From: Orbicella franksi
Taxonomy: Eukaryota
Direction of reading: 5' to 3'
NCBI GenBank assembly: GCA_964199315.1
Contig: OZ116700.1
Span: 14,880,001 to 14,944,000 of the forward strand
Length of the DNA stretch: 64,000 nt
In this document: positions 22,762 through 26,403 of the stretch, in pieces
Numbering within the stretch: the stretch's first letter is position 1
Layout of the letters: every line of letters starts with the position of its first letter
Program-made: the position numbers and the translations under genes
The notes under the pieces: generated by a model
Database searches by the model: none
The model's input: the letters and a program-made list of their open reading frames with translations, nothing else
What the model was told of the DNA's origin: nothing

Positions 22762-25700
22762 CTACCAGCCATTCTTGTTCTTTCTTCGTTTTTTCTTGGG
22801 CTTTGGTCGCCATATTGGTTTCTTTGGAGCAGGGGGCAAATTGGCCGCAGTTATCCTGTCTTTGCGAGCTTGCCTGCAAAAAGACAACCAGTAAAATTAG
22901 ACAGTTTGCGTAATCTAAGTAACTTTTAATACATGTGGCTTTGCAATTGGCAATATCAATAACTGATCAAATCAAACAACGTGTTTAATTGCAGCTGTTG
23001 TGTTCGGGGTCACTTAAACAAAAGAGACCAATCAGATTACAGCACACGAACGATGAATCTACCAACTTAAGTCGTTTGGAGTAGTCAATCAAAATCCAGT
23101 CAAATCCAAAGCCTCCTGGCCTTAACTTATTTTCCCGCGCTTAGAATCGGTGGAAATTTTCATTTGCGCCGTTCGATGATTGTATTATTCGCGTTTTCTG
23201 TGATGTGCAGGGTGTGGCACGTTATTCCGGCCTCTGCAAGTCTCTGACCTGTCTGCTGTCCTTAAAACCCGATTACTGTGTCAAAATTTAGCGACACGAA
23301 ACTAATCAAAATCTCTTCTTCAAAGAAACTGGTTTCGTACAGTTTTCGTCATTAATGCTCCTATAGGTGTTGACCTTAATATATAGGATCATTTACAGAA
23401 ACTGGTTGATTTTTGGTGTTTTCGATGTCTTTCTTTTCTTCCTCTGTATATTGGAGGTCTGGGGTGAGTGTCTTTTGGAAAGCTCTAACGTCACGCTGTC
23501 GATAACGAGAGTAGACTGGAAAAGATATTAAATGGCCATTAAAACAGAAGTTCCGTCAAACAACTCACCATAGTCGTCGAATGAAGCGGACTGTACATGT
23601 AACCAACAAGTAAATGACAAGGAGAGCAAAATTCACGACAAAAACAGTGGACATCATGTAGAAGACATCTTGCCAAGTGGAGGCAGCAATGCGAGCTCCA
23701 ATATGATTCACATGGCCTGTAGGGAAATAAGTATAAGCCAGATAACTAAACAGTGTAAGTCAGAAGAAACCAAAATGATAGAGGCGTATTGAGTGGGAGC
23801 GCTTTTTCAGTCTCTTCTAGTTTTACGTACGGAACTCGCCATGTTGTTTTCAAATAATTGAATTATGCGTTTCTACCAAGTACACTTCGCTGTTAAGGTC
23901 TGACAATACCAAAAAACAACACAACTGACTGCTTTTATCAGCGTAAACATCTACGGTCCTTAATCTGTACGTGTAGCAGGATATCTTCTGCTTTTCTTTA
24001 CTTTCCTTTTTCGTTATTTTTTTCACTCAAAGAGGAAATAAACGACCTGAACTTAAATGAAAAAACGAATAGCATAGTAGAAAACAGAACGGGATCAGTA
24101 ATGTTCACTAGATTACTAATATTTGGGCGATGCTTCACTAGCTACTTGTTCACAAATCAGTCGAATTATTATCACAGCGATCAACTAGGTTCTTCATCAC
24201 TTACTGTCTAAATATCCGTAATAGAACTTGACAACACCATCAGTTACATAGTTGCCGGGAACAAACAGTCTTCCAGTCCATGTAAGTCCGTTCCAGATCC
24301 ACTCCGCCAGCCATGTAATTCCATTCCAGGTCAAATCGGCCAGCCATGCAACACCATTCCAGACCTCATCGGCCAGCCATGTAACTCCATTCCAGACCCC
24401 ATCAGTCATCCATGCAGCTCCATTCCAGACCTTAGTAGCCAGCCACGTAACTCCATTCCAGACCCTGTCAGCCATCCAAGAAAATCCATTCCAGATCTCA
24501 TCAGCCAACGATATAACTTTGTTCCAGATCCTCTCGGCCAACCATGTCATTCCATTCCAGACCCCAGTAGCCATTGCCACCGTAATGCCATAACATTTGT
24601 TCTGTGCACCTGTCACCATTGCCCATGAAAAGTTCCAAACCCTTGCGATCAATCCAGGAGACCTGGGTCTGAATGATTCGAAGTCCTGACACGTGGCTTT
24701 TCGGGGATATTTAGGACATCCTTTGAACTTGTGCATCTGCCAATAGATTTGACAAGAGATTTCTAAAACCGTCTTCCATATAGACAGGAGCCATAATCGC
24801 TCCTGATATAGACCAATGTTTATAGTTTGCTAGGTGTGAAAGTTATATTAAAAGCTCTCCGGCACACAGATTACTTATTCTTACCTGAGAACTTCTTCCC
24901 AAAGCTTGTCAACAAATATGAGACTTACTAAATTTTCACGACAGAGAAATATATCAACCTCATTTCGCAAAGATGAACGTTCAATACCTTGCCATGTTCG
25001 GGTGAGCTGTTGATATCTGCCGAGCCTATGTTCTCAGTGAATTCGAAAACCAATTCCATGTCCAGTCTGATGGAATTGATTTCCATCTTAACCACGTAAT
25101 CCTGTAACAAGAAAATAGTAATATTAGCATACTATTGGAGAAGCGGGAGGGGGGAGGGGGGAGGAGGGGGGATTTCCTGGTCCTGCAAATGACGTTTCTC
25201 TTTTATCGGGTTTCAAGTGACCGCCATGATCATTGTGATGGTCTCTCTTTTCGCTGTACGGTAAATTGGAGAAATTTATGCGGAAGACCAGTGTCGATTC
25301 TTGTAGGAGCTTATGTCGGTTTGTGTAGCATTCAGCGACTAGGAGTATTTCTACTTTTGCAAGGATGGGATAATAATCCATCGCAAGGTTACCCTCGGCC
25401 CAGCATTAAATTTTTATACACCAGGATGGAGTGAGGCACCGTGGCAGTAAATTGTCTCGCCCTGGGGTCGGAGCTCGGACCAATAGATACGGAGTCCAGC
25501 GCAATCAAAATTCGGTGGACAACATAACGCGCCGCGCAACAACAACAACAACAACAAAATTAACAACAACAACAACAACAACAGCAATTGCAACTGGCCA
25601 AACAAACAGAGAACAATGCAGTATGGCCTTGCGCCAGGTTTTTACAAATATACCCACCTCATTAATCCAGCTTCCAGTGATGGTCGTACCATGGATAAAA

Positions 25701-26403
25701 TCCTTGAAGAAGAAATCCTGTTTCTCAACAGATTGTGGAGTTTCTGTGAAGATGAATTTACATTAATTGTCTCATTATGCATCTCGGTTAAAACAAAGAA
25801 GCTTTTTCACTTGAAGGAGTAGTTTAAAAGGCCAGAATAAAGAAAACAAAAGGAAGCGTGAGTACTGTACTAAACAATTGTTTGTCCACTAACAAACAAA
25901 TGGAAAGAACAGAGCAACGGTTTCAAAAAAATACAGTGGCGTTGAGCTGGGAGTGAACTTAAATGCAACCGTTTAAGCGCGCGCTTTACAGAGAAAAAAC
26001 GGAAGAACGCTCGTGCGCAAGTTCCCACGTGAAGATTTCCATGACAACCATAGTTGTTTATGTTTTCTAAAAAGTGAAAAAAACTTTTGTCTGTTAACTT
26101 TCCCCAGAATGAAGAGCACACTTCTCGTTTTTAAAGACTGTGGTGAATTGTTTCTTTCGCATTCAGCGGATAACAACTACATGATTTGTTTAGAAACACG
26201 AGTATCAATAATGGGAAAAACGCTTGTTGTTAGAGTGTAGGGTAAAGTTTTAGAGCGACAAAAAAGAAAAAAAGAAAAAAAGAAAACATGAATAGAAATG
26301 AAACGCATTAAAGCTAAGACTTACCGTCTCGTTTTCCAGAGTGCGTAAGATACGCTAAAAACAAGAAAAATGTCAGCGCCGAAAGTGGAAATATCACCTT
26401 CAT
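22762..26403 (-). CDS. Uncharacterised 356-aa single-pass membrane protein with signal peptide and 11-residue Trp-rich repeats
   Basis: Exons 26403-26325, 25743-25658, 25101-24988, 24736-24205, 23716-23569, 22873-22762. All are GT-AG and phase-consistent, totalling 1071 nt. N-terminal MKVIFPLSALTFFLFLAYLTHS is signal-peptide-like. Hydrophobic span VFYMMSTVFVVNFALLVIYLLVTCTV is followed by RFIRR and a K/R/P-rich tail. AATAAA about 100 nt past the stop (22661-22656). Confidence 0.8.
24269..24565 (-). repeat. Coding 33-bp tandem repeat, 9 copies (consensus xVWNGVTWLAD)
   Basis: Units: GVWNGMTWLAE, RIWNKVISLAD, EIWNGFSWMAD, RVWNGVTWLAT, KVWNGAAWMTD, GVWNGVTWLAD, EVWNGVAWLAD, LTWNGITWLAE, WIWNGLTWTGR. 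On the + strand CCATTCCAGA recurs with 33-nt periodicity. Confidence 0.95.
25320..25510 (-). mobile_element. tRNA-derived SINE, degenerate, reverse orientation
   Basis: Reverse complement of the SINE body at 41480-42017 (TAGGAGTATTTCTAC, CCAGCATTAAATT, GAGGCACCGTG). Confidence 0.65.
25537..25583. repeat. (CAA)n microsatellite
   Basis: Interrupted CAA run, directly visible. Confidence 0.95.

Follow-up and report, generated by a model that had tools for sequence, protein, structure and literature searches.

Tail tape-measure proteins of phages carry 11-residue units marked by Trp or Phe, in variable number, within proteins that are largely helical (PMC3271669, Belcaid et al. 2011; PMC5099701, Mahony et al. 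2016), and the ordered parts of these proteins form helical trimers or hexamers (PMC13338283). Here we describe a gene of the coral Orbicella franksi whose predicted product carries an array of 11-residue repeats of this type. The gene lies on the minus strand at positions 22762–26403 of a stretch of 64,000 nucleotides (positions 14,880,001 to 14,944,000 of contig OZ116700.1, assembly GCA_964199315.1), which we call the window and whose numbering is used below; the locus is part of a 35-Mb chromosome-scale contig of a 497-Mb genome. A sequence-only reading of the window had proposed an unrecognised spliced membrane protein at this position, with repeats resembling those of siphophage tape-measure proteins, and had offered two explanations for them, a captured viral or bacterial domain and an animal lipid- or membrane-binding type I protein that might act at lipid-droplet or symbiosome membranes. 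We find that the six-exon coral gene is real and functional. Taken as a whole, our analysis makes it fairly probable that this gene encodes a type I membrane glycoprotein of an uncharacterised family, with repeats of the tape-measure type that would work as an amphipathic 11/3 helix.

Tape-measure repeats have so far been treated as a feature of phages and prophages, and here they occur in an intron-containing, selectively maintained, multi-copy animal gene family. What is new is this setting for the repeat; the gene family itself has already been annotated.

The repeat array and its likeness to tape-measure repeats

The array occupies 24284–24646 of the minus strand, within the fourth exon. 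At 24273–24561, Tandem Repeats Finder reported 8.7 copies of a 33-nt unit, with 73% matches; it also gave a 66-nt period. In translation, nine clear 11-residue units run through residues 146–244, from TGVWNGMTWLA to EWIWNGLTWTG, and degenerate units such as ARVWNFSWAMV precede them from residue 124 onwards. The period search and the translation thus agree with the nine Trp units and one degenerate unit first described. The consensus in this copy is D/E-x-V/I-W-N-G-V/I-T-W-L-A, and Trp makes up 18% of the array. In the program-made list of open reading frames (ORFs), the sole long ORF is the repeat exon (24197–24736, 179 aa), again as had been stated. In RNA run X1, one contig skips 110 nt at 24327–24438 and has 11 other letters instead; the net loss of 99 nt equals exactly three repeat units, in frame, and points either to copy-number variation in the array or to a paralogous source.

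When the repeat exon was searched against the 38,880 PHROG families, seven matched, and six of these are annotated as ‘tail length tape measure protein’ (expectation values, E, of 4.5e-6, 6.2e-6, 6.8e-5 and weaker; PHROGs including 5493, 4200, 167, 1272 and 58). The seventh is an unnamed family of unassigned function, at E 0.09. These matches span residues ~36–152 of exon 4 and align to an internal stretch of profiles 732–1606 positions long. A sequence search of the entire PDB returned a single hit below 0.01, the tape-measure protein gp57 of 80alpha (6v8i, E 0.0026), which aligned unit on unit over 100 residues. By tblastn, 208 of 50,697 phage records matched, mostly Firmicutes phages, with a best E of 7e-15; the best 25 matches all lie in tail genes, most annotated as tape-measure proteins; two others are named minor tail protein, and two are copies of a tape-measure gene annotated as hypothetical. 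Units could also be aligned to the tape-measure proteins of Javan372, SplendidRed and VPE25.

The first homologue search, which was word-based, had matched only unnamed ORF fragments from metagenome-style assemblies. An exhaustive HMMER search, using a profile of seven exon-4 sequences against 1.84 billion representative proteins, gave 1185 hits at E up to 0.001. Short hits, which also match the non-repeat flanks of the profile, include the coral relatives described below. Long proteins match profile positions ~52–152 only, which is the array; the best of them is P0010 (1918 aa, E 8.6e-51). Nine long hits carry tape-measure signatures, four by PHROG at E 1e-69 or better and the other five by Pfam (PhageMin_Tail in three, one of which also has TMP_2; TMP_3 below the cut-off in a fourth; the TMP repeat in P0010). 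The remaining sampled long hits gave only side-hits typical of tape-measure proteins and matched no eukaryotic family. Outside the coral family, every assignable hit in this library was a tape-measure protein. Direct alignment of the coral profile with the repeat region of P0010 by hhalign gave a probability of 97.7% and 35% identity over 71 columns. In register, tape-measure units have the form x-S-[VI]-W-N-G-I-K-[SN]-T-x. A metagenomic protein of 787 aa, P0024 (L018:1042–3405), has units KVWSGVTWAAD/N, nearly the coral unit including its second Trp. Its gene sits among small genes of one orientation on a metagenome contig of 4 kb, and the protein has neither a PHROG match at E<=1e-5 nor a Pfam match at E<=0.001.

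To compare the units position by position, we built logos from 72 coral and 291 tape-measure units anchored on the periodic Trp. Both sets have I/V at −1, N at +1 (67% in coral, 49% in tape-measure units) with D as second choice, G at +2 (74% and 52%), a hydrophobic residue at +3 (V/L/I in coral, I/L/V in tape-measure units) and A at +7. The common core is [IV]-W-N-G-[IVL] at an 11-residue period; in the coral units only, position −3 is acidic and a second Trp stands at +5, followed by Leu at +6. In a permutation control, residues of the array were shuffled within units; against each of six tape-measure-like proteins, all 200 shuffled versions stayed below the Smith-Waterman score of the real array (z 4.2–5.8). 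In another, the Trp column was held fixed and the ten others were shuffled, and 30 of 100,000 permutations matched the tape-measure logo equally well (p ~3e-4). Both controls indicate that the order within the unit matters beyond period and composition. Since the phage proteins in them had been selected by their match to the real sequence, both carry a bias, from which the PHROG result is free. The likeness to siphophage tape-measure repeats was therefore borne out by profile methods (PHROG, HMMER and hhalign) and by BLAST, and at the level of sequence profiles the coral repeats are genuinely the same kind of unit as the Trp-marked repeats of those proteins.

This likeness is confined to the array. 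The coral protein has no Pfam match to the core tape-measure domains PF10145 (PhageMin_Tail), PF06791 (TMP_2) and PF20155 (TMP_3), Pfam searches with exon pieces and with full-length relatives gave nothing above noise, and the flanks, the other exons and the tail have no phage match. We also considered whether the product might itself be a tape-measure protein; an intron-containing animal gene for 356 aa with no core tape-measure domain rules this out.

The gene, its predicted product and its coral relatives

The pieces first described appear when the three minus-strand frames of 22700–26500 are translated. Read directly from the window, the minus-strand gene has six exons, all with AG before and GT after the exon at its borders. 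Joined, they make 1071 nt, or 356 codons and a stop codon with no internal stop, which reproduces the proposed model exactly. A stop codon stands in frame 5' of the ATG, and exon G+C is 0.40–0.48 versus 0.36–0.39 in four of the five introns. An Rfam search of the locus gave no match.

Exon 1 (26325–26403) begins with the ATG at 26403, ends at a GTAAGT donor and encodes a signal-peptide-like N-terminus in which residues 1–21 are hydrophobic and cleavage is possible after THS; it is conserved at 81–88% in paralogues and in a metagenome copy, L001. The mature N-terminal region begins in exon 2 (25658–25743) with ETPQSVEKQDFFFKDF, and this exon is 97% identical to its counterparts in paralogues L011 and L012. 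Exon 3 (24988–25101) encodes the remainder of this small region and an NSS sequon, and the corresponding part of an Oculina relative has predicted beta strands. Two differences from the paralogues were seen here: three paralogues have 18 nt more in exon 3 (6 aa, PNGNRT-like), and residue 105 lies in KAT where the paralogues keep an NAT sequon, so that the sequon has been lost in this copy. Exon 4 (24205–24736) encodes a Cys-containing linker, the repeat array and a conserved FVPGNYVTDGVVKFYYGYLD motif. Exon 5 (23569–23716) encodes a conserved juxtamembrane stretch and a single predicted transmembrane helix (about residues 288–316, window 23580–23666), and exon 6 (22762–22873) encodes the cytoplasmic tail, QARKDRITAANLPPAPKKPIWRPKPKKKRRKNKNGW, followed by the stop codon; this tail is kept in Oculina and Stylophora and more loosely in Porites. 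An AATAAA hexamer resembling a polyadenylation signal lies at 22656–22661 on the same strand, 101 nt past the stop codon.

Kyte-Doolittle averages over 19-residue windows exceed 1.6 at residues 1–21 and 287–319 only, and the 44 residues after the span include 17 Lys or Arg versus one Asp or Glu, a net charge of +16. Hydropathy and charge count therefore give a signal, one later span and a positive C-terminal side, the features of a type I single-pass protein, and they bear out the signal-like N-terminus, single hydrophobic span and very basic tail originally proposed. With this arrangement, the repeats come to lie on the extracellular or luminal side of the membrane and not in the cytosol. There are sequons at N86 and N128 and three Cys in the ectodomain; the ectodomain sequons, including the NAT kept in paralogues, are consistent with a protein of the secretory pathway. 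Judged from its sequence, the product is most likely a type I single-pass membrane glycoprotein with its repeats outside the cell or inside a vesicle.

The array also has the periodicity expected of the amphipathic 11/3 helix that the sequence-only reading had suggested. Its hydrophobic moment peaks at 1.53 at 98.2 degrees, is 1.11 at 100 degrees and does not exceed 0.24 at 90, 102.9, 120, 160 or 180 degrees. The Wimley-White interfacial energy is negative in eight of nine 11-residue windows of the repeat region.

A six-frame search of the same genome with the repeat exon gave seven further matches. Using the 356-aa model, tblastn found the six exons in order at four loci of this genome and on one metagenome contig, and the boundaries of the matches coincide with the predicted exon borders. 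Paralogues L010, L011 and L012 have canonical splice sites, the same exon order, orientation and phase, and intact frames of 362, 362 and 384 aa; L012 has two extra repeat units. That exon order and phase are kept in three intact paralogues, with no frameshift, argues for a gene beyond chance. At least four copies in this genome are intact. L013 is more diverged and has fewer units, and L014 (G000:C9:11395000-11404999), whose repeat exon is interrupted by a TGA and whose tail is out of frame, is probably a pseudogene. On metagenome contig L001 (10094–10724) the frame changes near the end of the repeat exon, reflecting either a pseudogene or an assembly error. The copies are partly clustered: L011 (also L004; G000:C3:14847614-14851147) is encoded on the opposite strand ~31 kb before the window begins, the chromosome-scale contig that contains it carries two more copies, at 15.52 Mb and 2.02 Mb, and Oculina has several family loci on one 38.5-Mb scaffold.

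Selection differs along the protein. Pairwise ratios of nonsynonymous to synonymous substitution rates (dN/dS) are 0.05–0.33 for the tail, its most constrained part, 0.27–0.52 for the juxtamembrane stretch with the membrane span, and 0.75–1.21 for the repeats. Thus, the membrane anchor and tail are constrained and the repeat array is fast-evolving.

Relatives extend beyond this genome. The named short hits of the profile search are ‘uncharacterized’ or ‘hypothetical’ proteins in RefSeq or GenBank from Oculina patagonica (LOC144645664; LOC144656780, XP_078373145.1), Stylophora pistillata (LOC111337428, XP_022799454.1, A0A2B4RT83), Pocillopora (P. damicornis, including LOC113684267, P. verrucosa and P. 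meandrina) and Porites (P. lobata and P. lutea, the latter XP_073246974.1). Blastp alignments run nearly from end to end: 51% identity over residues 1–343 with Oculina LOC144645664 (P0192), 36% over residues 19–343 with Stylophora LOC111337428 (P0158) and 29–30% over residues 24–352 with Porites proteins (P0175, P0176). In all these relatives, a signal peptide and the N-terminal region come before the Trp repeats, and an FxP..NY.T...FY..YL motif, the membrane span and a basic tail with a final W come after them, but the number and regularity of units differ. Arrays range from about 6 to 11 or more units across the family and are most regular in this genome, with 9–11; all coral lineages of the family share the W-N-G core, whereas Porites and Pocillopora relatives mostly lack the second Trp of the unit. 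The six-exon structure with the same phases was found in the three paralogues of this genome. By its sequence matches, the family covers both major stony-coral lineages. The best 150 of the 1185 hits included no named protein from Acropora, from sea anemones or from animals other than these corals, and since these are the best hits only and are cluster representatives, absence outside the listed corals does not follow. When the first 130 residues of the Oculina protein were used for a word-based search, they matched that protein alone. The description of the protein as unrecognised accordingly needs qualification: its relatives were already annotated, and it holds in the sense that all of them are uncharacterised or hypothetical, with no describing paper found. 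We found no paper that names any accession of the family.

Parts of the stretch are present in 12 RNA runs from several studies, of which we mapped four, one of raw polyA reads and three of assembled contigs. In the raw polyA data, both mates of a single read pair cover 23648 as well as 24218, and the bins between have zero depth; the mates are thus spliced across intron 4, which joins exons 4 and 5. The contigs of the three RNA libraries lie on exons. Over 25599–26121, which comprises exon 2 and most of intron 1, contigs are identical to the window and deeper than over the coding exons. This coverage could reflect carried-over DNA, RNA that was not spliced, or an alternative start whose product would be without a signal peptide, as are isoform X2 of Stylophora and one isoform of Oculina. 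Contigs that end at 22873 and 23560 continue into sequence not occurring in the window; they are probably diverged copies or chimeric contigs and were not used as evidence. Intron 2 contains a dispersed repeat of ~160 bp at 25306–25462, with 808 candidate copies genome-wide at first look; all 40 copies scored match, most at ~75–79% identity, and the element, which has no Rfam match, looks like a short interspersed element or a miniature inverted-repeat transposable element. This repeat accounts for a spike in RNA-contig depth of 2,600–20,000 in the bin 25240–25386 and for loose contig ends. The same intron has a (CAA)17 microsatellite and a short GGGAGGG-type repeat (25537–25587 and 25145–25172).

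Alternative readings and the origin of the repeats

Several results weigh against the reading of this locus as a gene for a membrane glycoprotein with a tape-measure-type helix. Read support covers one of the five introns, and the contigs from RNA libraries cover introns as well as exons; canonical splice joints were not found in these contigs, and exon 1 (26325–26403) has zero coverage in all three contig sets. A proposed check by spliced RNA thus came out in favour of the intron 4 joint, in one read pair, and left the other four joints without reads. RNA support is thus thin, and it is mainly comparative evidence that carries the gene model. Repeat-versus-repeat E-values are inflated, since a few matching positions recur with every unit. 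The Pfam TMP repeat PF05017, which matches the true tape-measure protein P0010 at E 2.2e-8, gave no hit to the coral exon at E up to 10, although HMMER filters may hide weak matches to a model of 11 positions. No confident structure was obtained: AlphaFold2 drew the repeats as long helices at low confidence, with a mean predicted local distance difference test score (pLDDT) of 38.9 for the repeat exon and of 41–54 for the repeats of the full-length Oculina relative, whose overall mean was 55.1, with more than 90 in the membrane helix and 46–70 in a four-stranded N-terminal region. Such values make the models unfit for fold comparison, and Foldseek scores of the Oculina model against AlphaFold DB clusters (TM scores <=0.15) were treated as meaningless. 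Searches of the ESM Atlas by features and by structure found no usable neighbour, the nearest by features being retroviral envelope fragments at a non-significant score of 0.77. Finally, the literature gave no expression site, partner or phenotype for any family member.

Where the repeats came from is a separate matter, and the account that we rate slightly higher, plausible though short of probable, is convergence. The units would have arisen by 33-nt slippage inside a coral gene and been shaped by the same physical demands, a long 11/3 helix and an aromatic marker, with no common ancestry. The 11-residue period and the hydrophobic stripe at −1, 0, +3 and +7 are expected from the geometry of an 11/3 (hendecad) helix, and transfer from phage to animal is rare. 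The failure of the Pfam TMP-repeat model to match and the coral-only marks of the unit, the second Trp at +5, Leu at +6 and the acidic residue at −3, point the same way. Helix geometry does not, however, explain N at +1 and G at +2, which are dominant in both sets, and the small fraction of column permutations that match equally well sits poorly with independent origins.

Capture from a phage or prophage is a tentative alternative that we hold to be somewhat doubtful. An ancestor of the stony corals would have gained a piece of a tape-measure gene, possibly one or a few 33-nt units, into exon 4, with tandem duplication afterwards. The shared core and period, the Ala at +7 and the Asp as second choice at +1 all speak for it, as do the PHROG matches, limited to tape-measure families bar one at E 0.09, the assignable non-coral hits in the protein library, the two-Trp unit KVWSGVTWAAD of metagenomic P0024 and the fact that the named family members come from stony corals only. 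We also found no paper reporting tape-measure-type repeats in a eukaryote, and none that describes an animal reusing tape-measure sequence from phage tails. Yet the likeness ends at the repeat, with no other tape-measure domain and no phage match in the non-repeat parts, so that the capture first proposed is supported by a phage-like repeat unit and not by the rest of the protein. The signal is carried by effectively ~5–6 positions of one 11-residue unit, and since the hydrophobic positions are required by any hendecad helix, only the N and G are then unexplained. The tape-measure proteins behind the logo were chosen because they matched, which biases the tests. Moreover, tape-measure-like units are most numerous in this genome (9 versus 1–5 in other corals), which fits recent homogenisation and not a decaying ancestral signal. 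Capture and convergence cannot be told apart with these data. Being a statement on origin, capture is compatible with the helix mechanism proposed below; the fuller history, an ancient transfer of tape-measure repeats to stony corals followed by domestication as the length-setting, membrane-active outer domain of cell-surface or vesicle proteins, is in our judgement unlikely.

That the protein is cytosolic and binds lipid or lipid droplets in the manner of apolipoproteins, perilipins or synucleins, an idea that goes back to the lipid-binding role suggested in the sequence-only reading, is very improbable. Amphipathic 11/3 periodicity is present, and true tape-measure proteins with like repeats give weak side-hits to Apolipoprotein and ApoLp-III. 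The coral protein itself has no match to PF01442, PF07464, PF03036 or PF01387 at E up to 10, and its signal peptide, C-terminal span and positive tail place the repeats on the non-cytosolic side, where the ectodomain sequons fit a secretory-pathway protein. We therefore rejected a lipid-droplet role on topology.

That the locus is no working gene, being a decaying copy or a chance chain of open frames, would fit the single RNA read pair, the uncovered exon 1 and the broken look of family copy L014, but is next to excluded by the intact 356-aa frame with canonical splice sites, by four copies that keep frame with purifying selection on tail and span, and by an end-to-end match in layout to RefSeq models of other corals.

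Proposed mechanism and comparison with known systems

We infer the helix geometry, any self-association or membrane contact and any cellular role of this type I membrane glycoprotein from the features above. After cleavage of the signal peptide, the protein would start with the small N-terminal region, followed by the linker bearing Cys and sequons and then the repeats. The array may form one long amphipathic 11/3 (hendecad) alpha helix, straight over ~100–120 residues and so 15–18 nm long, at 1.65 nm per unit. Its hydrophobic stripe would be made by positions g, k, d, h and a (L, V/I, V/I, A and W); G and the second Trp would widen this face, leaving T, D/E and N as a narrow polar stripe. Because so wide a hydrophobic face could not stay alone in water, it suggests either self-packing or a location at the membrane interface. 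On the outer or luminal side, the helix would accordingly either settle into the membrane interface or bundle with its own copies into a rod, much as tape-measure proteins pack within the tail tube. Its length would follow from the number of units, as in a tape measure. On the cytosolic side, the conserved, basic, proline-containing tail may anchor or sort the protein, and its PxxPxK-like stretch and polybasic run would suit binding to acidic lipid or to an adaptor. The fast outer domain, conserved anchor and clustered paralogues together suggest that the protein sits at the cell surface or on vesicles and meets a variable counterpart there.

The two origins carry different implications. If the repeats derive from a phage, this would be a rare case of a phage structural sequence domesticated by an animal. 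If they converged, a physical rule, V/I-W-N-G-V/I every 11 residues, would hold for long Trp-marked helices, and coral and phage systems could both be used to test it. With either origin, coral biology gains an uncharacterised family of membrane proteins, so far known from stony corals only, that combines a fast-evolving outer domain with a strongly conserved cytoplasmic tail and whose loci can be looked up in coral cell atlases.

Three known systems offer points of comparison. Viral fusion glycoproteins have, outside a single membrane span, a Trp-rich interface-seeking helix of ~20 residues, for example the membrane-proximal external region of HIV gp41. This resemblance is an analogy only, with no match in sequence or fold, and the coral array has ~100 residues of regular repeats. 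Apolipoproteins A1, A4 and E, apolipophorin III, the perilipins and the synucleins have amphipathic helices with 11-residue periodicity, as the coral array does; in contrast to theirs, the coral array is Trp-rich with a narrow polar stripe, membrane-anchored and, by predicted topology, non-cytosolic. The tape-measure proteins, like the coral protein, have a tandem 11-residue unit with an invariant Trp, variable in copy number and predicted to be helical. Tape-measure proteins are about 600 to >2000 aa long and are encoded in the tail module of a phage, whereas the coral protein has 356 aa encoded in six exons and, unlike them, a second Trp per unit, a predicted signal peptide, a membrane span and a basic tail.

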